From assembly GCA_000708835.1 (NCBI GenBank), contig DF237436.1, forward strand, positions 1 through 64,000: a DNA stretch of 64,000 bases. Direction: 5' to 3'. Below, one piece after another: positions 3,701-59,688 of the stretch. Position 1 is the first letter of the stretch. Each line of letters begins with the position of its first letter. A model generated the notes under the pieces. The model saw nothing but the letters and a program-made list of their open reading frames with translations, was not told the origin of the DNA and did not search any database. A program made the translations under genes and the position numbers. The DNA is from Klebsormidium nitens. Taxonomy: Eukaryota > Plantae > Klebsormidiophyceae.

Positions 3701-6700
3701 TCGTGTACAGGTCATGAATCGTGGCGAGTTGACGTCGCAATGGCAGCAGTTTGCCAACAACTCTTTCTTTAAGTTCGGCCAATCATCCTACCCACTCGTA
3801 CTGTACGAGGTGAGCGGATACTTCCAAACCTTGCGACAAATTAGCAACTTTACTGTCGTCCTTGGTTCACATTCAGATAAATCCAAGCAACTGGAGACCG
3901 ATCTCAGGCAACTCTGCAACGTTTCGCAGAGCTTTGAAGATGCTGATGCAGCGTCTGGAAGGGTTGACCCTTGCCATGGAGAGTCGCTTAGGGCGCTGGC
4001 TCTTCCCGCTTCGATCTTTTATGCGACCCCTTTTTCTAAAAGCAAGTGATGTTAAAGTACTGATCCAAGCACGTCACCGAAGGGTCAGATTGATGATCGA
4101 GATCGTTTGTATTAGGATTTTACCAAATCTAATTTTACCAAATCGAAGGTATTCATTCCGAGCGTCTCCTGTTCATGGCATGTCACTGAGCGACTTCTCA
4201 GCAACTATGACCACCCTAGATCTGATTGCTCTGGACTAACGAAAATAATGTTGTTGCGCAGCCCATCGACGAGCCACGCATCAACTTTTACCAGGACATC
4301 TACCTGAGCAGCGGACTCAATCACGTGCCAGGTGAGACACGCCATTTTTTCCAAGTACGTCGAGATCAATGAGCGAGGCACCCTTGATGGTCACAGTACA
4401 GGTTCCCTCAGCGCCTCAATTCTTAGCATATGAAAGTGCATTCGGCGGTTTCGTCATTGGTCGTCATTTGGCCGACTTCCTTTCGGCATGGAAAGTTTGA
4501 ATTTAAATCAGGCAACTTGCATATATTTCCTTCAAGCGCTTTTGAAAGGCGATCGCCGGTCCCTCTTGTCACCCCGCTTCAGCAACTCACATGCCAATCG
4601 CCCATTTTTCTTTCGAAGCCCACAGAGCTCTAGATCCGCCTCCCTTCTTCTCGGGCTGAGCTCTAGAAGTGGGGAAAATCAAGCACAACTTTTCTCACTG
4701 CCGCAGGGTTCCGCATCGCCACCAACTCGGATCCCGCCATGTTCAACCTGTACTCCGGCTCCCGGTCGAAAAAGACCGTTCATGTGCAGATCACCAACGA
4801 CACTGCCATCAACGTCAACAGCCCCGCCAACAACCGCGTCCTCGGCTACGTAAACTGGCCGCAGGTACGTCGTGCGCCCTCCGATGAGGATCTACCGGGG
4901 AAGTCTTTGGAGGATCCTCTTAGGATAATACTACTGAAACCCTCGCACAAGTTCGTCTTCGCTTCTTCTTTTGCGCTGTCTCACTCTTCGGAACCAACCA
5001 GGTACTCGCACGAGTTCGTTCACAGTTGTTTTTACGTTGTCTCGCTCTTCGCAGCCAACCAGGTACTGCAAGCTCGATTCTTTGACGCACGAGTCTCATG
5101 GTCGACTCGCTGCTTTTACTCTGAACTCGGTTGCAGAAACAGCCGTGTCTGAAAGCTTTAACAACCACATATTACGTAACTTGGTCTGCTGGTCAGGGGG
5201 AAAAGGAGCGGAACGACGGACGCTCTCAGTTTCCGCTTTCATTTTCTCAGCGTCATGCTCACTTTCTGGTTGTGCGCAGACGGTGACAATCCCGGGCAGT
5301 GGAAGCTTCACGATCGTGACCATCTACATTGACAACACCCAGACGTACCGTTACATCGCGCACTCTGCTCAGGCACCTGCTGACGTCAGCAACGTGGCGG
5401 GTCCGCTGCCCAGGTAGGCCCGTGCCGCAGCGTAGACACAAAAAGGCACTCATGACGGCTGTTGCTCATGTGCGCTTCAAGATGCTGACTTGCTTGCAGC
5501 TTCGGTGGACTGAAAATGGAGGGCAAACGAGAGATATGGAGCCCTCCTTTGAGCGACCTAAAAGTGAAATTTGAACCTCTTTGGTTCTGCCTGACGGCAA
5601 GACAGTGCATTCCTTTCTGCAACAGGAATCTCTGTTTAATGCTGACATTCATACATTGTTCCCTGACCTCGAAGCATTGGCTCCAACCTCTCGTGTACGA
5701 ACTCGAGTCTACCTCTGCTCCCGAAATTCAAGTGCAATTGGTTTCTTTCCCTCGAGTCTTGTTACGAGCTTCAAGCTCTTCCCTTCAGGGTAAAGATGCA
5801 GAACTACACCCAGATTGGCCGCAGCGCCTTGCCCTCTCCCCCTTCCGGAATCTTGACGTCCGCAGGCCAGGTCAATGTCAACGGCAACCAGCTCATCTGG
5901 GTTTCTAACAACACCGCCATGCTGACGTACAAGCTCGACGCCAGCACAGGTAAGCCGAATGGACACTGGACCCCGATACTTGACCCAATTTAGGAACCGA
6001 ATGACTCGCTAACTCGCTCCCAGCTCCCAGCAAGAAACACATCTAGGGCAGCTTTGCTTAACAACAGCTCTCAAACCAATCGTTGGTTCAGTCTGTAACA
6101 CGGACGTGGGCTTAGACCCCCAGACTTGCGCATAAATGGCTCTAATTCGGCGAGTGCTGCTTCCTGCAGATCCTCATTTGGGGGGCTGCTCCTTATCTTC
6201 AACTACTTACGGTTTTCAAGGCGATCTATCCTTAACGCATCACGTCGTTTCTTTTCGCAGGCAGCCTGACCTTCAACAGCGTCACCCTGTTCACGGCGAA
6301 CTCGACCACTGACGTCCAATGGGGCGTCGTGACGGCCATCCCCTTCCCCGGCGCGTCCGACGGGTCTTTGGCAGTAGTCAAGGTGAGCTTCCAAGCGTGC
6401 TCGCTGATCATACCTTCCAAGCGTGCTCGCTGATCATACCTTGCATAAGATGACTGATGCGTCTGATCAGAAGGGAGGTCTGCAAGAGAGATCTTACAAA
6501 TCGATGCTGCATTCAGCATCCGCAAATGGCTCGTAGGGTCTTGTATAGCAACGCAGATGAATCGCACTATCCCGATCATCATCGTGGAAGTATAGGCTAA
6601 GCCGCAGACGCAAAATTGTCTCGTGACGCGTTTCTTCGGTGTAGAACGGAGAAGAGTAGTACCCTCTCGAAGAGCCCAAGCTTCGTGTACGAATGTAATT

Positions 6701-46656: not shown

Positions 46657-49277
46657 ATGGTGAGTTTTTCGCCCACGGCTGAGAGACATGCCCTTGGTGC
46701 AGGGGCTGTCCTACTCTTCACGGTGATATACGACCGGAGGGCTAAGCTGTTGGCTACCGTAGTTCGACCGCCTCTCTTGTTGTAAAAAGGTCGAGCACAT
46801 TTTCATTTGAGTTCGACGGTTGGAGTCTTCTCATCAGCTTGATCCTGGACTGTATTGCTCGTAAAGAGAACAAATGGTCCGTGGCATTCTTCTGTGTAGG
46901 TTTTCAGGCGGTTTGTGGAGATTGGCCGGGTGGCTCTCATCAACTATGGTGAGAACTACGGCAAGCTGGTCGTCATCACCGACGTGGTCGATCACAACAG
47001 GGTGAGGCAATATTCTGGTGATGCATGCCTTTTGGGGTGCAAGTTGTGACCGGTATGAGCAGGCTGGAATGAGTGAAGAAGAGGAAGAGGCAGCAATTTC
47101 CCAGGAAAGGCGGCATGGTAAAGGATGTGCTTTGGCTGGCAGGCATCTGTTGAGAATGGTTATTGGAATATTCTGCTACATGAAGATACGTGGTAATGGT
47201 TACCTGAGCAGTGGAGGGAATGTGGTGTGCATCCTACAGAGGGCAGCTCTATGATGGCGCCTTTGGTCCAGCACGCGGCTCTTGAAAAGTTGATGAGGTG
47301 ACGCAAGAAGAGCAACTGGCAAAAAGGACATGCCCTGGCCATTAGACAGTCCTGCAAATCAAATCACGGGCTCAATTACGGGCAAGTAGATCTTAGTGAA
47401 CATTCTCTTTTCTTGGGACTGCCACATGTTGAGCTGAGGAAGGCTTCCAACCAAGGTTGCTGCTGAGCCTTATGAAAGTGCATCGGAGCTTGTGGAAAGC
47501 AAAGGGGATTCTTGGCATCTGGAGAAGCAGTAATAGTTTTAAAAGGAGATTTGGGACTCGTGCGCTCTCGTGAAAGTTGCAGTCTAGTCAACGGGCTTGA
47601 TTGAGCATGCCACGCCAGCACGAACAACAAATTGGCACCTCTGAGACACAAAGCTTGGGAGACCTGGGGGGCACAGCTAGTTCCTGCACACATCCGAGCA
47701 GCAAGACCCTTATTGGCGATCGACAAGGCCGCGGTGTCAGCCTGTTTTGTCAGATTGCTTGTATCTTCTACGGAGTGTCCTGCCGTGGGATGTCACTTAA
47801 GGCGTCCACTCTAAAAACAGTGCGAGGAAACTTGAAGGAGTCTTTCCCGTGTAATACCACCTATTTCTGAAGCGAGCATTCTGACGGGCTTCTTCTCTAT
47901 ATGCAGGCCCTTGTTGACTCTCCTGACATGGTGCGCACTGTGATCAACTTCAAGAGGCTTACGCTGACCGACATCACAATTGAGATCCGGAGACTTGCAA
48001 GGAAGAAGGAGCTCAAGGAGGCCATTGAGGCGGGCGGTAAGTTGTCTGCTTCGACAAGTCTGCTTCGTGTTTATTTACTATGTGAAATTGGTTCATGTGA
48101 TTTACTGGCTGACAGGCTTCTATCAGGTCAGTGTACTTGTTGCTTTGGACCGTAGTGAAGGTGCTGGCTTTCAGCAGGAGTGACCTACACAGCTTTGTTT
48201 AGTTGGGCCTTGGTGCACTATGGAATCGGGGGGGGTGGTGCAGGTTGGCTTTGTTGTTGTGTTCTAGGACGCTGTCTTTCAAGAAAAGCAGCTGGGCAAA
48301 GTGCCCAGTGTTTGCTCGACACATCGGGCACAGGGCAAGGGATGCTGCTGGCCTGTCGGCTCAGCCATGGGAAATTGTTTCCTTTAGGAGCTCGAGCAGT
48401 TCGGCAAGTTGTCCAGGCACTTGGCAAGCATAAAGGATGGTTCTAAGTTTAGCAGACGAGCGCAACTGCAAGGGGGCCAGGTTGGTAGTCTAGCAGGCGA
48501 GTGCGTCTGCTCAAGACAAGGATCTCACGCGGGCCCTTATGCTGGCTGCAGAGGTGCACAAGAAGTGGGCGGCCAGCTCATGGGGCAGGAAGCTGGCGGT
48601 GCAGGACAAGCGGGCGAAGCTGGGCGACTTTGACAGGTTCAAGGTCATGGTGGCCAGAGTCAAGGTGAGCCGCTGAAAGAGGGGGAATTGCCAAACCTGG
48701 GCTTTGAGACCTCTTTCGCTGTCACTGTGGGGTTGTCTTGTTTCCGTAAAGTGTGAGTCGCCGCGTGTTGGGAATGCTTCCGCAAATGCAGAGCAGCTTG
48801 GTCTCGGGTGTGCCCGCAGAGAGTTATTGGGGTACTGCCTCATGGGTGTGCTTTTGCGAAGGGAAAAAATGGGAGTATATTCTTAATGTGGGGTTTCACT
48901 AGAGTTCATTGGACGGCATTGGACGGCAGAATGAATCTTATCGAGCCCGCTATGACCCCTGCTCTTTATATAACCCAAGAAACGTGAGTCTGGTATTGAT
49001 CCGGTGGAAACCCGCGTTGGAAGTCAACTGGTCGGGCTTGGGCTCAATTCGCAGACCTGGGCTGGAAGTGTCACTATCAAACATTCGTCGCATGTGGGAG
49101 AATCTTGCTGCAGCTTGGGCACAAACGCATCCGTCAGCCCGTTTGGCATCAAGTGCAATCTTTACGCTTTCCATTCATGGGGGAGACTGGCATCGCTGAC
49201 TGTGGTTTTGTCGCTCCCCTTTGCAGAGGAGTGCCGTCCTCAAGCGGGAGCTGGCCAAGCTGAGGAAAACAAAGTAA
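46657..49277 (+). CDS. RPL14: 60S ribosomal protein L14 (eL14), 5 coding exons
   Basis: ATG-only first coding exon 46657-46659, then 46900-47001, 47907-48036, 48552-48664, 49227-49277: [58 protein letters not shown]...[10 protein letters not shown]...[29 protein letters not shown]. Confidence 0.98.
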
Positions 49278-51011
49278 CCTGGACACTGGCATCTGTCAAC
49301 GAAATGCCAATTACGGTTATTGCTTTCATTTTCCGCGCTTTTCCAGTCCAGCCCTCCCCATTGGCTGGCTGAGTTGCTGCTCTCTTTCTTTCATCATTGT
49401 TCCTTGCTTGCGAAGTGACTTTTCGGGCCTCAGTAAAGCTATGTTCTGACCCATTTGTGACCACCCAACATCGAGGTGTGCCGGGCCTAAGTGAGTTTGT
49501 TGCTAAGCGTCCGCCCGACTGTACATGCGTATGAAACTATGAAACTAGCGAGTGTGCATGGATGCCGCCGAGCTCGCCACTTAACTTACTGCGCACTTAC
49601 AGAGTGGCGGCCACTGCCAGGCCAGTTGTTCATTCATGTCTAAGGGTTCATCACATTTGGCTGCGGCATTGAGTACGAAATGAGACCACCACACATTCAG
49701 GGGCCTGCGTTCATTATATGCCGTCATAACCAGCTTCACAGCAGATCGGATCAACAAAAGTGGTCATGGGAAATCATGCAATTTGGACTGCACATATTAT
49801 ATAACACATGCTTGAACTTCAATATCGAAGTATATACATGTCGCGCCCGTCTCATCCTTGACTCAGTCCGGAATCAATCTGGCATGCACGAAACAATCAC
49901 ATATTATTGGTCGTTATATGTGACGAGACACAGCTTGCAAACTTACGTACAGCGGTGTTATACAATCTGACTCTAATGCAAGCGATGCTGCGTCACAGAG
50001 ATCACCTAAACGCTCAATAACGGAAGGATTGAGAATCGAGATGTCAAACATTCCTAGCTCCGTATACAGATACAATTCTGCTCTAGGTTTCGAGAGGTGC
50101 CAGCACATGGGCTCTTGAATCAACGCCCAAGGATCCGTGCATATGTTAAGCCAAAAGTCAAAATATAACACTAAATTGATTAAATCTACACTGCAAGCAC
50201 AAGAAACTGTTCACTTAAGCTTGCTTTTAACCTCCTGCACCTATCGCCTCTCACCTTGGACTTAGGGATTCAAAGCGTAAGAATGTCTGCACCTGAAAGA
50301 TTGACTAACAGCTTGCCGCTCAATTCAAAAACGGTCCAGCCCCCAAGAATTGACTCCAACCTCATCTGACCATCTAATCACTCGCTAATTAAGGTTACGG
50401 CAAACCTGGTCAATACCTTGTCTTTGAAATTCCGACTGCTGCTGAGGAACCTCAACTCAAGAATCTGCTGGAGGGATGCACCTGTCTAAGGCTGAGTCGA
50501 AGGAAGTCTTTGCTTTGCAATCGCGAAGCTTTGCGAACCCGTAAGTTTGTACCATAAAATCCTCAATAGTAGATTGTCCTACTACCTCTACTTTGTAAGT
50601 CTTACACGAGAGAAGTCCCGCCAAAAAGTGAACAATACCCTTTGCTACGGCCGCAGAGCTGCCTTTGACTTCTTCTTTGCTGCTTTAATCTGGCCCAGTT
50701 GTTAATAGCCCCTGCTGCGAGTACCTCTCTCAATACCGACAATGTCTGTTTCTCGAAATATCAACTCCGACAAGTACTGCCATCCGGTGATCCGCACGAC
50801 CCAACCCTACGACCACACGTCCCCATGTCCCGGCCCTTCTCCCCGCCTTTCGCCCTTGACGGACGTACCGGCCCTTTCGACGTCCGATCCCGCTCCTCTA
50901 ACAACCAGCGCTCTTCTTGAATCGGGACGCGCCCTGCATCCCCTCTCTGAACTCTCGCACATCTAGCCTGGCTCTTTCTACCCGCCCTAGTTCTTCTCTC
51001 ACACCCGTCAC

Positions 51012-53405
51012 TCACGCCTCGTAAATCTTGAGCACGCGCTCGATGGGCCGCCGGCAGACGGGGCAGCCCTGGCCGCCCTGCTGCACCAAGCGTCCGCACG
51101 CAAGGCACGTGGCGTGGTGGCCGCACGGCACAAAGACGCACTCCTTGGGCGCGTTGCAGCACACGATGCAGATCTCGTCCTCGGGCAGGCCCTCGATGCT
51201 GGCGGGGGGGGCGTCCGTGGAGGGGGCTTCTGTGGGCAAGACAAGAGGAGAACGTGAGCGGGGGGGCGAAGTTCGGCTCTGTAAAACGTGGACGACTGGC
51301 CAGCGATTGCGGATTCTGGCAGACCAAGAAGCAGCAGGATTCTACGAGACAACAAGTTGGTGATTCCATGTACTCGACCTTTGAGTGGTCGATGTGTACC
51401 CCTGTATATATGCATTGTCGGTGGCAGTTCAACGGCGAAGTAGGGCAGAGATATAATTGAAAATTTTGCACTTGACAGGTTCTGTGTCAGGGTTGGCAAC
51501 AGCAGATTTCCGAATCAGACACGGTCTGAACGGCTTGGCAGCACCGTGTATGTGGTACCAGAAATTTACCACTAAAAGTGAGTTGAACTTTTTCCAGACA
51601 GTGCGACAGGTTCTGAGTATCTAGAGGGGAATCCACCATCTTCCAGAAATATGATGGGAACTAAGCATACAGCAGCCCAATCCGCAGTTCCGAAAATGCG
51701 TAGAAAGGGGAGCACACTGTTCAGGCTGCTACTTGGAATCTTAAGGCAGTTGCGCTTGCAGCATACCATTACATTGAAAGGTTCAGAAGGGCAGGCTTAC
51801 CTGGCTCTTTGCCCTTGGCCGTACGCTCCCTGGCCGCATCCGCTGCCCCACTCGAGTAAGAATAAGTGCCTTCGGCAGTTGGAGGGCTTTCTTCCCATTC
51901 GCTCCAATGATTCACAGACGCCGGAGGGTTTTCGTTCCTCTTGGTCCGTTGTGCTGCAGGCCCCGTAGCGCTGCTCGTGCCTGCTCCACTGCCGTCCTGA
52001 CCATACAATGTTGCAAACATCTCGACAAAGCGTGCGTTCTTGGGGATCGACTTGCTGAAGAACACGCCCGCTCCCGTGGTTTTGAACGTGGACCCGTTGA
52101 ACCCCGGCTCGAACCACTTCTTGGCCCCAGCCTCTGCGGACCCCCCCCCAGACTTCGTTTTTGGAGCGCTGGTAGGTCTGCCGATAAGGGGAGGCTGCTC
52201 AAGATCGTTTCTCCTGGCCGTTAGCCGAGGCGCCCTCTTCTTACAATAGCAGCAGTAGCAGGTAACAATCGTGCCTATGATCACTGCGATCCCTCCCCAC
52301 GTGCAGCCTATGATGATAGCTACTCTTTTCTGGATGGAAGAGCCAAGATTGGATTGCTTGTATGGGGGAGGCGGGGGCGACCGAATGGCCGGGGGCGAAA
52401 ATGCGTAGATTGAGCCACGCCCTGTGCAACAAGTGCAGCTGTAACTTCCGGCTGAGATAAGGAGTATCTTCCCTCCAACTGCAGTGCACTTGTCTACCGC
52501 GTCAGTTGTATTTCTTGCAGATGGGCAGCTCCGTTTGATGGCGTTGACGCAGGGGCTCGTGGGCAGGGGGCCAGGCGGGGGAGGAGGGGGAGGAGGACTG
52601 CAGTACAAATAAAGCAAGTGTCATTTTGTGGCCTGGTAATACTTGTCGCCATGGGGTTGACTCAAATGACTTTTGTTCAGCAAGTGCACACTGTAGGAGG
52701 ACTTTCTAGCATGGCAAGCAGTCTTCCCTCACAGCAAGCGCATTCACTTTGTCGAGGTTCCTAGAAGAATGTCACTGCCGGAAATTAACAAGCGAATCTG
52801 CTACCTTTACTTGAAACATATGCCTTTTGTCTGGCTACTCGGACCTGGACGGAGAAGCAAAGTCTCCCAACCCAATGTAGTTAGGGTCCAGTCAAAAAGC
52901 TGAACTGAGGCAGGTGGAACGTGCTGGGTGTGCAATGCTGGCCAGCCCCTACAAGTAAACTCTCCTGACACTCACAGCATGACCAATTGGCAACCAGTGC
53001 GACAAAATTAGCAACAACAACTTTATCACGCCTGGGTTGCTCCATATGGATATACAAAATGACTCACAGCTTTGGAGCTTCGATGCACGGGCACAGGAAG
53101 ATGCCAAAGTAGCCGCCGTCAGCGCACTTGTCGCCGTTCTTGCAGGTGCAGATATGGCCGCTGGCGCAGGAGTAGTCGCTGTAGCACCCCGTCTCGTAGG
53201 CCCATCGGGGGTCACATGTGGGGTCGCTGTTGGGTAAAACCGCTCCAAATTGGAACGGACCAGGGGCAGGGGCAGGCCCTGCCTGGAGAACCTTCCGGCC
53301 CGGTTGAGAATGGGGCCCTGAGTCCGCGTCTGGCTCCAGTGCTGAGCTTCCGCCAAGTGTCAGCAGAAGAGTGGCTATGACAAGGCAGCCAAGCAAGAAA
53401 GACAT
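51012..53405 (-). CDS. Type I membrane protein: signal peptide, two Cys-rich ectodomains, Pro-rich linkers, TM, cytosolic RING-HC (C3HC4) E3 ligase; ~450 aa
   Basis: Exons 53068-53405, 51801-52597, 51012-51229 (1353 nt, phases 2 and 1 consistent). Signal MSFLLGCLVIATLLLTLGGSSA; TM VAIIIGCTWGGIAVIIGTIVTCYCCYC then KKR; RING CIVC...CGH..TC..C...CPVC with C-terminal IERVLKIYEA typical of XIAP/MDM2/LUL-type zf-C3HC4_3 domains. Confidence 0.9.
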
Positions 53406-53847
53406 GGTGGGATTTCGAAGGAGCGAGGGGCCAAGAATGTGAGCGGGCAAGAAGCTACTTGAGGGAGAGTTTTGGCTGCAAGATGTCTCGCTTCACGCGA
53501 AAACTTGAGTAATTGATGGCGGGAAAGATACAGTGGGTTCCAATTGCTCTGAAGCGCTCCTTAGCAGCGACACGGGGCTTGGGTTTTAGAGAATTGGCTG
53601 CTCGTGATAGAATGACTGCGAACAAGACAATGCAGGCCCCTTGGATAGAAATGCTTCTTAGAAAGGCCTCTGGATCACTCCAATTGCGTTGTAAACCTGT
53701 ATCACTACGCCGAATCAGCTCAATGGCAAAAAGTAGGGTGTGAAATGTGGATGCAACTTGTGATTTGCAGCATAAGGAGGCGTGACCGGCTCAAGTCTCC
53801 CCTCAACAGGATACTGAGCGCCGCCCTTCTGCGTCCCTCAACCCAGC

Positions 53848-53870
53848 TAGTAGTAGTAGTAGTAGTAGTA
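53848..53870. repeat. (TAG)7 microsatellite in the divergent intergenic region
   Basis: tagtagtagtagtagtagtagta. Confidence 0.95.
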
Positions 53871-54454
53871 CTCTGCCAGTGGTCAGTAAATTGGCAGCAC
53901 TTGGCTGTCCTCGCTGGTCAAACTGGTGCTCTCTCAGTCTGCTTTGCACCTACGGTAGTACGGTCTGGACCTAGGATACCTACCTAGACTCCTAGTCCAT
54001 CAAATGCATGGGCGGATTGCAACATGTTCACATCCTGAACATCATCAATATTGCAGGCATGCATGCCAGTAAAAGCACGGGTGATCCCCCGCCCTCGGAC
54101 ACGTGACGTTGCCCAGCCCAGAAAACTCGGATCGTCTTGACACAAACTTTCAACAGGATTGCCGGTTCCCCTGACGGTTCACGCCTGCCGCGGGGAAGCG
54201 TCTGCTCCGGCGCGCGGCTTTCAACGGCATCTCCCGTCTGGTGTCACCAATCTTCGCAAAAGTGCGTACGGTACCTACCAGCTTTTGCTGCTCCATCATC
54301 AATGAGTCGAAGTCTGTCTGACTTCGCCTATTAGGCTACACTCCCAACGTCCAAGTTCATTTCCAGACTTAGCCTTGTTTGTAGCGTTTGAATCAGAAGG
54401 CGTCGAGCTGGCAATACCTATCTAGAGGGCTGAAGCCTGAAGGGAGTAGAGGGC

Positions 54455-57317
54455 ATGGCAGCAACAGCTGTTTGCTTCCGCCCGCATCAGCTTCAACATT
54501 CAGCAACCAAGAGCTTTGCTTCAGAGCGTGATCTGCTGGCAAATCAACGCACATATTGCTCACAGAGGCAGGGAAAAGCTGCATTCCACTGCGTGATCCA
54601 TCAATCTATGCCCGCAAGGGCAAAAGCTCATCTCATAGCCAAAAGTGCTTGTCGCTTTGACTCGTGTTCCCTCCGCTCTTTGAACAAACGAACAGCTGTT
54701 GATAATCCCCAATTAGCAGCTTCTAAATCTAGGACCAAGTGTCTGGAGCTGACACGGCGTCGTTGCAGCACATCAATGGCAAGCACAGGGTCGGGGAACG
54801 AAGCAGAAGAGGCTGCCAAGTCAAGCAGTCAGCAGGACATGACCGTGTTGTTCGTCGAGATGGGAGTTGGCTATGACCAGCACGGGTGAGAGTTTGCGTC
54901 AGCAGCTTCCCAATGGAAGCAGCATTGTCATAGTTTTAGGCAACCTGGCTGCGATTGCAGCCAATCGCTGCAGGATAGGATGATGTAGGACGCAGCTTCG
55001 GGGTGGTGGTGGCATTGCCATGCACTTTCGCTGCTGATGCCGCAGACAATGGCGCTGGTGGTATTCAAGTCATTGGTGTCATAAGTGCGACTAGGAAGGT
55101 GGCCAAACCACCGCATGGCAAGCCTTCAAAGAGTGCTCTGTACCACCCATTGAGCTTTTTAACGGCATGATTGAGTCATGATTCATTTGTGCTCTCAATT
55201 CCAGGTTGTCTGGGAATTCTACAATTTGGTGCCTGCTTGATGGCAAGTTACAAGAATTACCTCAAGGTTTGCCATCTTTCGCAGTGCTAATGAGCGACAT
55301 GTTTGCTACAGTTGCTAACACTCGCATTCGCAGCTTGACAAACTAAGTGGGCCCCTGATCAATAAGAGCAGGTTTGTGGCAGCACGAGTTTCCGTGCCTT
55401 TAGCGAACAGAGGTGTCCGATCTTCAAATGATGTCACGGCTCTGCTCTGCAGGCAGGATATTACCAGCGCAGCAGTCAAAGCATGCAAGAATGCCATTAC
55501 GTCAAACTCCATACCTGCATTCCGAACAGGTGGGACATGCTGCTACCCTTTGAAAGTTGGCAGACAACATGGATTTCTCAGCAGCAGTTCCATGTCAGAT
55601 TGCTGACAACTTTCAGTTTGTGGGAGCTTAGACAATCACCAACTTGTGTTCGGAGCACCGTTCCTGGACCCCTACTACTTACTGTCTTGTGACGAGCCTG
55701 ACTGCTGCGCTCTTCCTACACATATCCATTCTAGAATGATGACAGCCCGCTTCTACTGAGGAAAGCCACAGATCTTGACCACCCTCCGCTGTCTTGAGAC
55801 CACTTCAAGGACAGTCTGCGGTGCCCTTGGAGACTCTGCCCACCAGTTCCTAAGTCTGAGAGGCTACTTGTATGGTACATATCGATAGCAATGCTTGATG
55901 TTTCCCAACTGGCTTCAGGCTGCTGTCTTGTTCACATAGAAGCAAGAGTAGAGCACAAACCTGACCACAAAGACGTCCAGTTGAACGTTCGGTTACAATC
56001 GGCTCGCCGATTGTGCCTTGTGTATATCTCTCAACGAACCACCTTTTCATGAAGCGACGTTTAAAAATGCAGTGCAAATGAAGCATCAGTCCGTTTTTGT
56101 GTTGTCTCTTGGGGTGGCCACTTCTCTCGTCCCTCAATCGTTTGGAGCCCGTTCGAACGATTTATGGAGAATCGGAGCGGGAAGCAAGGAATATGAAGAG
56201 CCTGCCTGACTCGAAGAGCCATTGTACATTTCTGACATTCCTCGGCGCCTTTTCTTTTGGTATAGGTGCGATTCCTGGGGTGAGCTGGGGCGAGATGAAG
56301 TTGAAAGTCGTCCTGGGCGTACCTCGGGAGGCCGCTCACGAGCTGGACATTCCAAAAGTGAAGGCCATCTTTCCATAGTAAGGAGGGATCCTATTCTTGA
56401 AATGCAAAGTGCTTCAAATAAGTCCGGCGCTGTGCTGCTTTACTTCGTGCGTGCATTCAAGCAACCTTGAAACTGTTCGCTTGAACTCGCGGATTGCCGG
56501 TACTTTCAAGGTCCGAAGACGATTTTCGATTTGTCCAGCTCATCGACCACGATTTAAAACGCCGTCCGTTCATAACATCGGGCGATAGGGTATCTTTGAT
56601 GCTGTCTTGATTACCACAACTTCCTGCCCGCTGTTTTCTAGGAGAGTCTTGTGGAGAACGTCGCACGAAGGGCAATAGGTTGCTTTTGTATGTTTTTGGG
56701 ACGCAAGGGACGCAAATGAATCGTTCGCTATACAAAATGGCTTCCAGAAACAGGCGTTTTGTATGGGCATTATTGCCTATACAAATTAGAGAATGCATAT
56801 GCAAAACGCTTGATTTCATGTTTTGCATATGCATTATTATGCCTATGCATTTTGCCGATGGTTTTGCATAGGCACTTTTCTGTCGTTCGCATTCAAAGGT
56901 TTTCCAAAATTGGGCGGGATTGAGTCAATCTGCTCAACAAGCACTGGGTCTGGACGGCCTAAGCCTAGCTGCGATAAAATATGGAGGCCTTTACCGAGCA
57001 CGTTTCGCACGACGTCCTCAGTAAATCGTGCTTGCATTTCCCGACGCTCGCGGATTCAGACCCGATTTTCCGAGAATGGAAAATCGCTTCAGCATGCTAG
57101 ACCGTAGTGCAATGGCCAACCCGCAACAGACTTTTTCCTGTTTGCTTTCCTGTTGCCCTCTTGTGACTTTGCCAGCTTTCGTTGCAGTGGCGACATAATT
57201 GACGTGGAGGTGAAGGACGGCGGACTAGTGTGCTCGAGTGGGGTCGCCATCGAGGCCCTCGGGGACAAGAACGATCAGTGCTACATCGTCAATGCGGCCG
57301 TTTATGTGGGCTACTAA
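54455..57317 (+). CDS. Lin0512-family protein (conserved hypothetical CHP02058) with probable organellar transit peptide
   Basis: Exons 54455-54885 (alternative start 54776), 55453-55529, 56266-56377, 57188-57317. VLFVEMGVGYDQHGQDITSAAVKACKNAITSNSIPAFRTGAIPG...KLKVVLGVP...LDIPKVKAIFPYG...DGGL...NAAVYVGY matches this family from memory of its motifs. Confidence 0.9.
56682..56874. repeat. Array of four inverted-repeat pairs built from one ~12-nt motif (TTTTGYATRKGCA), MITE/foldback-like
   Basis: ttttgtat..atacaaaa (56684/56730); tttgtatgggca-ttat-tgcctatacaaa (56758-56785); aatgcatatgcaaaac-12nt-gttttgcatatgcatt (56792-56835, perfect 16-bp stem); tgcctatgca-15nt-tgcataggca (56840-56874). Confidence 0.85.
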
Positions 57318-58409
57318 AGTGTCTAGCTGCGCATGAAGAGAACTTGTGCAAGCCCTCCTAATACGCTCAAACCCAGCCACCGTTGGAAGGAGGCTGTGAA
57401 ACTGCTCAAGTCACAAAATTTTGTTCCTCAACTGCCTGCGGCATGGAAAAGGGGGCTCAGATCTCCCTGATTGCGAGATTCTGAAACCGTCGTAGGATAG
57501 TCAGGGGACTGAGCCATAGCCGGACACCATTGAGAGCTTGATGTCTTTGGACGATTGGCCACAAAGGCTCAACTCCGACCGGCTGTTTGACTTCGCTCTG
57601 CGATACACGCCAAGGCAACCAGACAAGCTATTGGTAGCTGCACTCTCCGTGCAAACGATCGTGGAAAATATTCATCCTCTTGAGCCAGTGAGTACGGCAG
57701 TTCAGAACATCGTCTTTCCGTGCAGATCGACCACCTACTTCCTTGTTTCACGTACGTCATATGTGCTTATAGAAGCACATAGAGTTATCTTGTCATTTCA
57801 CTGAGCTGCTTATGTGGAGGCCAGATGTTGCAGCTATACGGCCGTGGCGCCATAGCTGAGTGCTCGAGCTAGCCACGTTGCTCTTTCCTCGAGCTGGAAT
57901 TGCACAAAAGTGACATGGGTGGATGGTGGCCAGCTGTATGCGGGCGCCCATGACTCTTGGACTAGGATATCATCAGCCGCAAGCATCCAAAAATTCAAAC
58001 AGTACCCTGGTTACCAGGAATCGTATGGACTTCTGCAACCATGATTTCAGAGACCCGACTGCCATCACCACTACATGCCAAATCCTACAGTCACATGCAA
58101 TGCATGCTTGAATTGACTTTGATCATGACAGGCATAACCTGCATGCCAGAATTAAGCGGCGTGTGCAGTAAGAGTGACTGAACACGCAAGAGCAGCCGTC
58201 TACACGTAATTGGCATTGTCACTAAAAATTGGCATGAAGGCCCATATGGACACAAAGTGTCCCTCGTGTGCGCGTCACACAAGGTGTGCGAGGTGTCAGC
58301 TCCTTGAGCTCGACTGTTCTATTGCGGATGTCTACAAGGCCGACTCACCGTCGTTTCCCCGCCTTTCAAACAGGACTCGGCGGGGCAACAAAGTGTCAAA
58401 CTGGGAAGC

Positions 58410-59688
58410 CTAATAGAGCGTGCTATTCCAAGGAACTTGATAACCTCTCGGGTACGATGTGTAGATCTTGGGATAAGCTGGCCAGACGTCCTTCACAAAC
58501 GGCCCATAGAAAGTCTTTGGGAGCACTGCAAAACGACGCAGCCGGCAAGGTGAGCAGCTAGAGCAAGGTTGGATGGGGATTAGAAACGCATCACTTTCCT
58601 GCAGCTAAAAGACACACCTCACGCAAGGACTTGCCTGCCATGACGAGAACAAGCTAGGAAGGAGTTCAGCCCTCGCTGCGCGCACAACTCAGATGAAGTC
58701 AGAAGAGCGCAAGCAGAGTAAGAAAGTCGTCTTTGAAACAGCGTTCATATTCATTTAACGCCTGCACTTACCCAAGTACCGATCGTCTCGCACTTCGAGA
58801 GCAACTTGGAGGAGGCCCAAGAAATAGAGTAAGAAGCCACTGTACAGGACGCAGAAGACGAGCAGAATGTAGCCTGCAAAGTCGTGAGAAGAGATGAGTA
58901 AAGCCCCTAGGAGGGTTGATGAATGCTGTCACGATTGGGTGTGTTTCAGCTGTGGGCTCAGTTTCAACGAGCTGTGAATGGGCATACTCTGCTTACGAGG
59001 GCGCACCCACCTTTCAGCATTGGTTGACAGGAGAATTTCCTAAGTCATTGTGAGCACCGGCGCTACTGCAAGCTTCCAGCTCACTTTCAAAAGCAGGAAG
59101 GAGACCACCTTCTCACCCCAGTTCCGGTAGGTGATGCCAAAGACCCCGGGGAACCGCTTCTTGATGATGCGCATGGACGGGGATCGGCCATAGTTTCTCC
59201 GAGCCGAGGGGCTCCGAGTCTGAGGGAAAGCAAAAGCAGGACCTCAGCAAAAGAGACTTCTTTGGCAGCTCAAACCTCAAAGTCCCAAACTTAGGCTGCT
59301 GATCCTGCTTAAGAACAACCAAAATACTTGCTTTTTCGACTTTTGATGAACTAACTTCTTGACTTCAGCTTTCACACCCGCAGCACATCAGTGCTTCACC
59401 CATGTACCTAGGGGATGCTTGTACATGCCAGATGTTTGAGATCTGTGCTGCACAGGTCGGCCCCGGCATTTTGGGCCGGGCGAAACTCCGTCCTAGCTAT
59501 GACACACACTGGCAACTCAAGGCTGTGCAAAGGCTGCCCAGCAACCGGTGCATAGAGTAATCAGGAATGCTCTCAGTCATGGGAAAGGATGACAGCAGCA
59601 CTCTAAGAGGTGACGACCAAGGGTTGTTGACCTTTCTCACCAATTCAATGTTGGAATCGATGGCGACCCTGGCCGCAGGCGAGGCCAT
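58410..59688 (-). CDS. Small (~122 aa) single-pass membrane protein of unknown function
   Basis: Exons 59641-59688, 59117-59219, 58772-58873, 58410-58525 join in frame with canonical GT-AG: MASPAARVAIDSNIELTRSPSARRNYGRSPSMRIIKKRFPGVFGITYRNWGYILLVFCVLYSGFLLYFLGLLQVALEVRDDRYLVLPKTFYGPFVKDVWPAYPKIYTSYPRGYQVPWNSTLY. Last exon may be incomplete. Confidence 0.7.

Follow-up and report, generated by a model that had tools for sequence, protein, structure and literature searches.

Gene structure and transcription

The stretch analysed here, referred to as the window, comprises 64,000 nucleotides of the land-dwelling alga Klebsormidium nitens (GenBank assembly GCA_000708835.1, contig DF237436.1, positions 1 to 64,000 of the forward strand). 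A gene of three exons on its minus strand probably encodes a type-I single-pass membrane ubiquitin ligase (E3) of the RING-HC kind, found so far only in Klebsormidium-type algae (Table 1). The coding exons sum to 1353 nt, corresponding to 450 amino acids (aa), with phases compatible across the three exons and a stop codon in frame 5' of the ATG at 53405. An earlier note on this DNA, made from the letters alone, had read the locus as a receptor-like protein in which a signal peptide, two Cys-rich modules and Pro-rich segments are followed by a transmembrane helix and a cytosolic RING finger. Inspection of the sequence, its translations and the hydropathy profile recovered every feature it had listed, each where it had been placed, with the 8-Cys and 6-Cys patterns exactly as claimed, an ensemble well beyond what chance would produce.

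About 0.61 of the sampled words of 50800-53600 are present in nine sequencing runs, a share that fits spliced RNA since introns make up 37% of this interval. The junctions were checked in one run from each of four studies (X1, X2, X5 and X6), the runs being labelled "RNA?". In each run a single RNA-type contig of 2550-2691 nt covers 50800-51229, 51801-52597 and 53068-53600 with 0 mismatches and omits exactly 51230-51800 and 52598-53067, joining 51229 to 51801 and 52597 to 53068. The skipped segments have CT..AC ends on the plus strand, equivalent to GT..AG on the gene strand. For contigs that lack the introns and show canonical junctions in four studies, hardly any origin but mRNA is conceivable. 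Because they cross both junctions exactly, the RING exon is spliced to the transmembrane exon; the earlier note had staked its model on this joint, and the transcripts came down on its side. The gene model is exact, and the gene is transcribed and spliced as modelled.

The same contigs refute the reading of the locus as an artefact, in which separate genes or open reading frames (ORFs) have been wrongly joined, and leave it a negligible probability. Prokaryote-style gene callers do split the locus into three ORFs, and after testing nothing else speaks for such a mistake; in each of four studies one RNA-type contig runs through the three exons, and three species share the splice sites and phases. 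These are K. nitens and the organisms behind two contigs, L001 and L002, described below, and "three species" refers to this set throughout.

The RNA-type contigs reach 212-241 nt past 53600 and 578-704 nt past 50800. The mRNA has a 5' leader of ~410-435 nt and a 3' untranslated region of ~790-915 nt. An upstream ORF of 17 codons, with its ATG at 53773 (minus strand), lies out of frame with the main ORF within the RNA-covered leader. A (TAC)7 microsatellite, in minus-strand reading, occupies 53850-53870, just upstream of the contigs' 5' ends (53812-53841).

Domain layout of the encoded protein

Database searches and structure predictions were carried out exon by exon, and the joined 450-aa translation was used for alignment, hydropathy and the ratio of nonsynonymous to synonymous substitution rates (dN/dS). 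Hydropathy analysis revealed two hydrophobic stretches in all, at aa 1-22 and aa 204-226. The first is a signal-type N-terminus with a Kyte-Doolittle value of 2.15 over aa 1-19, and this hydrophobicity is kept in the orthologues despite an identity of only 27-36% to L002. Small residues at -3 and -1 mark a putative cleavage site. The second is the sole internal stretch with a value above 1.6, and the basic residues (KKR) come after it, which is why a type-I orientation is proposed. The domain order and type-I single-pass topology of the earlier note hold on this hydropathy profile, the orientation being deduced. The locus thus carries an expressed, conserved and selected gene; in its protein, a complete RING at the C-terminus accompanies two hydrophobic stretches, one N-terminal and the other internal.

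The two Cys-rich modules between these stretches are separated by a run of eight Pro, and Pro runs occupy this position in all orthologues with differing lengths and flanks. The stalk of K. nitens includes SPPPPPY; that of L002 has P5 and P9 runs without Ser or Tyr. A cytosolic linker of ~165 aa precedes the RING.

The N-terminal stretch ahead of the modules is variable around a core of residues (R37, L40, Q41 and P44-P48) that are invariant in three species. Within it, the R-x-x-L-Q motif at 53283-53297 (minus strand), 15 residues past the signal peptide, reads RKVLQ in K. nitens and L001 and RSLLQ in L002. It may be a processing or sorting signal. Plant S1P/SBT6.1 sites of like form are RRLR and RRAL in CLEL6 (PMC7162652), and the aa 37-50 region is a possible candidate for a subtilase (S1P-type) site or a hydroxyproline (Hyp)-glycosylation site.

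Table 1. Positions of the gene, its transcript and the segments of the encoded protein in the window
Feature	Positions	Strand	Residues	Description
mRNA, approximate extent	50100..53841	minus		~2.6-2.7 kb spliced; ends deduced from reach of RNA-type contigs
Coding gene	51012..53405	minus	1-450	three exons, two GT..AG introns, 450 codons plus stop
Exon 1	53405-53068	minus		ATG at 53405; ends two bases into a codon
Intron 1	53067-52598	minus		GT 53067..AG 52598
Exon 2	52597-51801	minus		ends one base into a codon
Intron 2	51800-51230	minus		GT 51800..AG 51230
Exon 3 (RING exon)	51229-51012	minus		stop TGA
Putative signal peptide	53340..53405	minus	1-22	hydrophobic core, then GGSSA before LEP; small residues at -3 and -1
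R-x-x-L-Q, then (A/P)APAP	53256..53297	minus	37-41; PAPAPGP 44-50	three-species invariance
8-Cys module	53070..53231	minus	59-112	C-x9-C-x5-C-x5-C-x-C-x5-C-x10-C-x-C; gaps 9,5,5,1,5,10,1
Pro8 spacer	52573..52596	minus	114-121	separates the two Cys modules
6-Cys module	52408..52554	minus	128-176	C-x7-C-x12-C-x16-C-x-C-C; gaps 7,12,16,1,0; one N-glycosylation sequon
Pro-rich stalk	52327..52407	minus	177-203	includes SPPPPPY, aa 186-192, 52380-52360
Transmembrane helix and juxtamembrane CYCCYC-KKR	52234..52326	minus	204-226; 226-234	Kyte-Doolittle 2.22
Conserved cytosolic block	52000..52125	minus	271-312	KKWFEPG[FY]NG..FKTT...PK[NH]ARF.E[ML]FA
WFEPGFNGSTF		minus	274-284	cytosolic region
HWSEWEE		minus	343-349	cytosolic region
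RING-HC domain	51015..51179	minus	396-450	Zn-ligand core 51170-51054; tail RRPIERVLKIYEA 51053-51015

Orthologues and selection

A word-indexed search with exon 2 returned one protein, P0001, on the 3.5-kb Logan contig L001. This contig carries the whole gene, with an intact ORF of 438 aa and all four splice dinucleotides kept; identity to the window is 90%, 79% and 91% for its exons and ~60-62% for its introns and flanks. An exhaustive profile search with exon 2 against 1.84 billion representative proteins yielded only P0001 and a second protein, P0002, which sits on L002, a eukaryotic JGI metagenome contig of 33.8 kb. The L002 protein has 448 aa and is 54% identical to that of K. nitens; its gene comprises the three exons as well, interrupted at identical positions and in identical phases. 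Positions 730-14337 of L002 are collinear with 46885-59237 of the window, the gene order being fully conserved over ~12 kb. Two extra in-frame ATGs (L002 ~6510-6581) lie between the upstream stop and the ATG aligned with the K. nitens start, so that the true start of the L002 protein and the length of its pre-core segment are uncertain.

Two further JGI metagenome contigs carry the gene. L003 holds a partial copy with 86.7% DNA identity to L002 throughout, and L004 a complete one that is 99.4% identical to L002 up to exon 2 and 87.6% beyond. L002, L003 and L004 are three versions of one locus from two sister metagenomes (JGI 3300060284 and 3300060285), and their pattern suggests a single Klebsormidium-like alga, present either as co-occurring strains or as haplotypes that recombine. 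Neither the exon-1 profile nor a profile of exon 2 from three species brought up anything past these locus copies; when metagenomes were scanned for the locus with profiles of exon 1 and of the RING, in two scans, pattern matches appeared, of which none was confirmed as a relative. Paralogues were found neither by the exhaustive exon-2 search nor within the 64-kb window. The 8-Cys module was compared with proteins of 62-196 aa, the exhaustive search being that with exon 2, and the module could occur in longer proteins such as receptor kinases. The earlier note had proposed looking in other algae for the same domain order; the same gene with the same intron positions was recovered on four contigs, as positional orthologues and from close relatives only. 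As far as these searches reach, the family appears to consist of such orthologues in a few close relatives.

Selection was estimated by the Nei-Gojobori method for K. nitens against L001 and L002. The 14 ectodomain Cys stay unchanged, spacing included, across the three species. The 8-Cys module shows 76-93% identity and a dN/dS of 0.12 (L001) and 0.09 (L002), the RING 87-95% identity and 0.06-0.07, and the cytosolic block at aa 271-312 a dN/dS of 0.06-0.20, with 59% identity to L002 compared with 35-38% for its flanks. These three segments are under strong purifying selection. The 6-Cys module, at 47-55% identity and a dN/dS of 0.43-0.68, evolves fast on a fixed Cys framework, and the helix with its juxtamembrane residues has a dN/dS of ~0.5 against L002.

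The C-terminal RING finger and its predicted dimer

The only Pfam match of the whole protein is zf-C3HC4_3 (PF13920), with an E value of 2e-13 and a score of 50.3 bits against a cut-off of 27, covering profile positions 1-49 of 49. The Zn ligands, C-x2-C-x11-C-x-H-x3-C-x2-C-x10-C-x2-C in the order C3HC4, occupy aa 399-437 and end 13 residues before the C-terminus; 8 of 8 are invariant in three species, and the second loop is x11 in L002. A RING-H2 has His at ligand positions 4 and 5; ligand 5 is Cys420 here, which sets the finger apart from that type, and zf-RING_2 reached 21.8 bits, under its cut-off of 27.3. The nearest sequences in the Protein Data Bank (PDB) are MUL1 (~2e-9) and MDM2 (4-8e-8), along with MYLIP, MDMX, XIAP and the cIAPs, with MGRN1 weaker. 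The earlier description of the finger as an XIAP/MDM2-type RING-HC is borne out both by the PF13920 match and by the PDB matches to MUL1, MDM2, MYLIP and XIAP.

Also kept are the Ile next to the first Cys, the Pro that follows the seventh and the Arg directly behind the last. In RING E3s these positions contact the ubiquitin-conjugating enzyme (E2) and ubiquitin. The tail RRPIERVLKIYEA ends in ...VLKIYEA; counted from the C-terminus, its Tyr448 stands at -3, and MDM2 and MUL1 have their tail Tyr at the aligned position. The domain has the marks of a dimeric C-terminal RING, namely a position at the extreme C-terminus, a short hydrophobic tail and an aromatic residue ~3 from the end. In RINGs of the MDM2, XIAP and RNF4 type, the tail forms the dimer and touches the donor ubiquitin across it.

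Structure prediction of the homodimer gave a score of 0.43, compared with 0.00 for the best of three controls, a pass that may come from solved RING dimers which the model has memorised. For comparison, 21 of 30 solved homodimers came up to this mark, as did 0 of 23 monomers. Three homodimer runs agreed in 100% of contacts, with a partner predicted local distance difference test score (pLDDT) of 87, and placed the interface at the tail and central strand (exon-3 residues 31, 33-39 and 64-71).

The similarity to MUL1 raises the question of whether the protein is a divergent ligase of the MUL1 (animals)/SP1 (plants) type, with an uncleaved first helix, the Cys-rich part in the intermembrane space of an organelle and the RING in the cytosol. 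MUL1 and SP1 are proteins of organelle outer membranes (mitochondria, plastids or peroxisomes) with two helices, the second of them spanned by a GIDE domain. Like them, the K. nitens protein would be membrane-anchored with a non-cytosolic middle domain, and the outline of a hydrophobic segment, a domain of ~180 aa, a helix and a C-terminal RING is similar; the MUL1 RING is also its closest PDB sequence, tail included. However, neither a GIDE domain nor any other Pfam family was found in exons 1-2 at E ≤10, and the Pro8 and SP5 runs, the N-glycosylation sequon and the signal-peptide-like c-region are features of secretory-type proteins. The linker of 165 aa before the RING has no known counterpart in MUL1, and this RING subtype is common to many unrelated proteins. 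An organelle ligase of this type is therefore a most improbable reading.

The predicted dimer also bears on the idea that the protein chiefly ties the wall to the membrane as a structural element, its RING being a dimerisation or docking module devoid of ligase activity. The Pro-rich rods and Cys modules do resemble parts of wall glycoproteins, and the predicted interface is well defined. The eight Zn ligands, the Ile, Pro and Arg and the tail Tyr are, however, kept at a dN/dS of 0.06, a pattern that would fit a working ligase, and we regard a mere tether as very unlikely.

Ectodomain and cytosolic linker

Pfam searches of exons 1 and 2 in three species at E ≤10 identified no family in the ectodomain or the cytosolic linker; a match to TsiV at E 0.29 was rejected as noise. 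The exon-1 profile, run against PDB sequences at E ≤10, returned nothing, and a feature search of the ESM Atlas with the 8-Cys and 6-Cys modules gave no usable match. The two modules, compared with each other, are unrelated. An EGF-like reading of the 8-Cys module was rejected, as Pfam gave no EGF match and the signatures C-x-C-x2-[GP]-[FYW]-x4-8-C and C-x-C-x5-G-x2-C are both absent.

The AlphaFold2 prediction for exon 2 was confident for the 6-Cys module alone (pLDDT 77-85), which forms one helix and three strands. Its best fold matches were beta-alpha-beta-beta-beta half-domains (VIA-align wide, best Z 3.0, VOC/FosB), which are generic and were set aside as uninformative. A shape search of the Atlas gave TM-scores (template-modelling scores) of ≤0.23, and Foldseek on the PDB returned no match at E ≤0.001. 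The 8-Cys module did not fold in the exon-1 model, whose pLDDT was too low for use, and for this reason no fold search was made with it. The earlier note had called the Cys modules novel, and this holds over the range searched: they match no Pfam family, PDB sequence or Atlas cluster, and the 6-Cys module, the only one that folded, matches no known fold. The ectodomain is without a recognisable relative, a statement that covers sequence methods in the case of the 8-Cys module.

At least two SPPP motifs are the published criterion for extensin and PERK proteins (PMC4769139). SPPP(+) motifs number one in K. nitens, two in L001 and none in L002, and an extensin/PERK-type Hyp-rich glycoprotein domain was rejected on this count. 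The ectodomain had been described as extensin-linked; of this, the conserved poly-Pro spacer stands, and the extensin motif, single in K. nitens and missing from L002, does not.

Comparison with known membrane RING ligases

The spliced RNA encodes an ectodomain, a membrane span and a cytosolic E3 domain in one chain, which is the architecture of a receptor-like E3 ligase. The concept itself is established, with RNF43/ZNRF3, MEGF8-MGRN1 and GDU1-LOG2 as examples, and in the textbook case of RNF43/ZNRF3 an extracellular ligand controls the ubiquitination of surface receptors (bioRxiv 10.1101/2020.05.25.113944). In land plants, RING fingers account for 13.9% of the inner domains of WAK receptor-like proteins (WAK-RLPs) (PMC10834447), some ATL members carry GUB_WAK_bind (PMC5133618), and a "ring finger-RLP" class has been named in Arabidopsis (PMC9603095). 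The earlier note's suggestion of an undescribed system survives for the ectodomain, which is an orphan, and not for the general layout, since receptor-like RING ligases (RNF43/ZNRF3, WAK-RING and "ring finger-RLPs") are already described. The novelty lies in joining two orphan Cys modules on Pro rods to a C-terminal RING-HC of the putative dimer type, not in the succession of ectodomain, helix and RING. The further claim that the known transmembrane RING families are different proved right, as shown below for PA-TM-RING and ATL proteins.

RNF43/ZNRF3 and the other PA-TM-RING proteins (animal Goliath/GRAIL and plant RMR) resemble the K. nitens protein in that a single chain runs from a signal peptide and an ectodomain through one helix to a cytosolic RING. 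PA-TM-RING proteins have a PA-domain ectodomain and a RING-H2 close to the membrane. The K. nitens protein, in contrast, has no PA domain (PF02225; Pfam at E ≤10, three species), so it does not fit the PA-TM-RING group, and its C3HC4 RING lies at the extreme C-terminus and is of the dimerising-tail kind.

A role such as that proposed for RMR would make the protein an endomembrane sorting or quality-control ligase, whose Cys-rich domain binds cargo, for example Pro-rich wall glycoproteins, in the lumen of the Golgi, trans-Golgi network or endosomes, while the RING marks the cargo receptor or neighbouring proteins. Such a ligase would have the same topology and domains as a ligase at the cell surface, and the present evidence does not separate the plasma membrane from post-Golgi compartments. 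Without a PA domain, a RING-H2 or an identified known sorting motif, however, the protein lacks the hallmarks of this group, and Pro rods of such length characterise proteins exposed to the wall, among them PERKs (PMC4769139). We consider a sorting ligase unlikely, if still the most substantial competitor to a surface ligase.

Similar in general character are the WAK-type proteins with an ectodomain, one transmembrane helix and a RING, which likewise pair a Cys-rich, wall-directed ectodomain with a RING in the green lineage (PMC10834447, PMC5133618, PMC9603095). Theirs, however, are GUB_WAK_bind and RING-H2 (PF13639) domains, whereas the K. nitens protein has orphan Cys modules and PF13920, and no sequence relationship was found. 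ATL proteins are marked by a RING-H2 of their own layout, a GLD motif and N-terminal helices. Membership of this family was rejected because the RING is a C-terminal RING-HC, not a RING-H2; no GLD motif is visible in the three-species alignment.

MDM2/MDMX, XIAP/cIAP and MYLIP (IDOL) share with the K. nitens RING the Pfam family, the ligand spacing and the C-terminal aromatic tail, and the homodimer predicted for the latter would use the tail and central strand. They differ in being soluble proteins with p53-binding, BIR or FERM domains and without a membrane helix or ectodomain. PERKs resemble the protein in having a Pro-rich extracellular part directly before a single helix, and they too belong to the plant lineage (PMC4769139); they differ in their kinase, their repeated SPn motifs and their lack of Cys modules, the K. 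nitens protein having one SPn motif and a RING inside.

Proposed mechanism and its weighing

Taken as a type-I membrane RING-HC ligase, the protein could work as follows. The signal peptide would send the N-terminal 180 residues into the secretory pathway, where the 14 invariant Cys would form disulfides and the Pro runs would probably be hydroxylated and arabinosylated into stiff rods. The walls of K. flaccidum contain Hyp-Araf4 (PMC5371791), so the machinery to arabinosylate such runs exists. The rods would hold the two small Cys modules off the plasma membrane and into the cell wall, and the helix at aa 204-226 with its cluster of Cys, Lys and Arg would anchor the protein, possibly with S-acylation. 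On the cytosolic side, a flexible linker of ~165 aa would bear short conserved docking motifs; the block at aa 271-312 is probably a linear motif in a disordered linker, given the AlphaFold2 pLDDT of ~30 there. As in MDM2, XIAP and MYLIP, two copies of the C-terminal RING would pair via tail and central strand; the dimer would recruit E2~ubiquitin and tag membrane or cortical proteins in its vicinity, whose most likely fate would be endocytosis or degradation. Control could be exerted by clustering of the ectodomain through a wall component or ligand, which would make the protein a receptor-like E3 ligase. Because RINGs of this kind are active as dimers, ectodomain clustering would be the most plausible control point and the most attractive mechanism, through which wall or ligand sensing might be coupled to ubiquitination.

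Several observations weigh against this proposal. The AlphaFold2 model of exon 1, built on a two-sequence alignment, had a pLDDT of 43 and left the 8-Cys module unfolded; for exon 2 outside the 6-Cys module, including the cytosolic linker, the pLDDT of ~30 predicts disorder. The ectodomain has no recognisable relatives, so any binding function is a guess, and the dimer score carries the reservation given above. Signal-peptide cleavage and topology are read from hydropathy, and surface location, ligase activity, substrate and ligand are all putative. Finally, several of the motifs invoked are not conserved. CYCCYC, the candidate S-acylation motif, becomes CVCVSQS in L002, and HWSEWEE shrinks to HW[ST], so that these two features of the earlier note are present in K. 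nitens and reduced in its relative. The SPn motif varies in number as given above, making the poly-Pro spacer, not a wall-linkage motif, the constant.

Klebsormidium stands near the base of the land-plant lineage, and wall and environment sensing in such algae is an open subject whose discussion is dominated by receptor kinases. The transcripts prove that an alga of this kind links a wall-type outer part directly to a putative ubiquitin ligase. Its C-terminal and probably dimer-dependent RING subtype differs from both the animal (RNF43/ZNRF3) and the land-plant (WAK-RING/ATL) versions. If the ectodomain does control RING pairing, ligand gating of ubiquitination would have been invented independently here, and the protein would offer a compact model in which to study it. 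The locus also supplies two small disulfide-rich modules without known relatives, in a family confined so far to a few close relatives. On a bolder and rather doubtful view, early streptophyte algae of the land would have developed, alongside receptor kinases, a design in which pairing of orphan ectodomains by a wall component or ligand activates a dimer-only RING and so converts an external signal straight into ubiquitination, the Cys modules being new folds with a specific wall or peptide ligand.

Neighbouring genes

The region collinear between the window and L002 includes a ribosomal protein L14e gene at ~47.9-49.3 kb of the window, which lies tail-to-tail with the RING-ligase gene. It also takes in a gene for a small pump-beta-like membrane protein at 58.4-59.7 kb.

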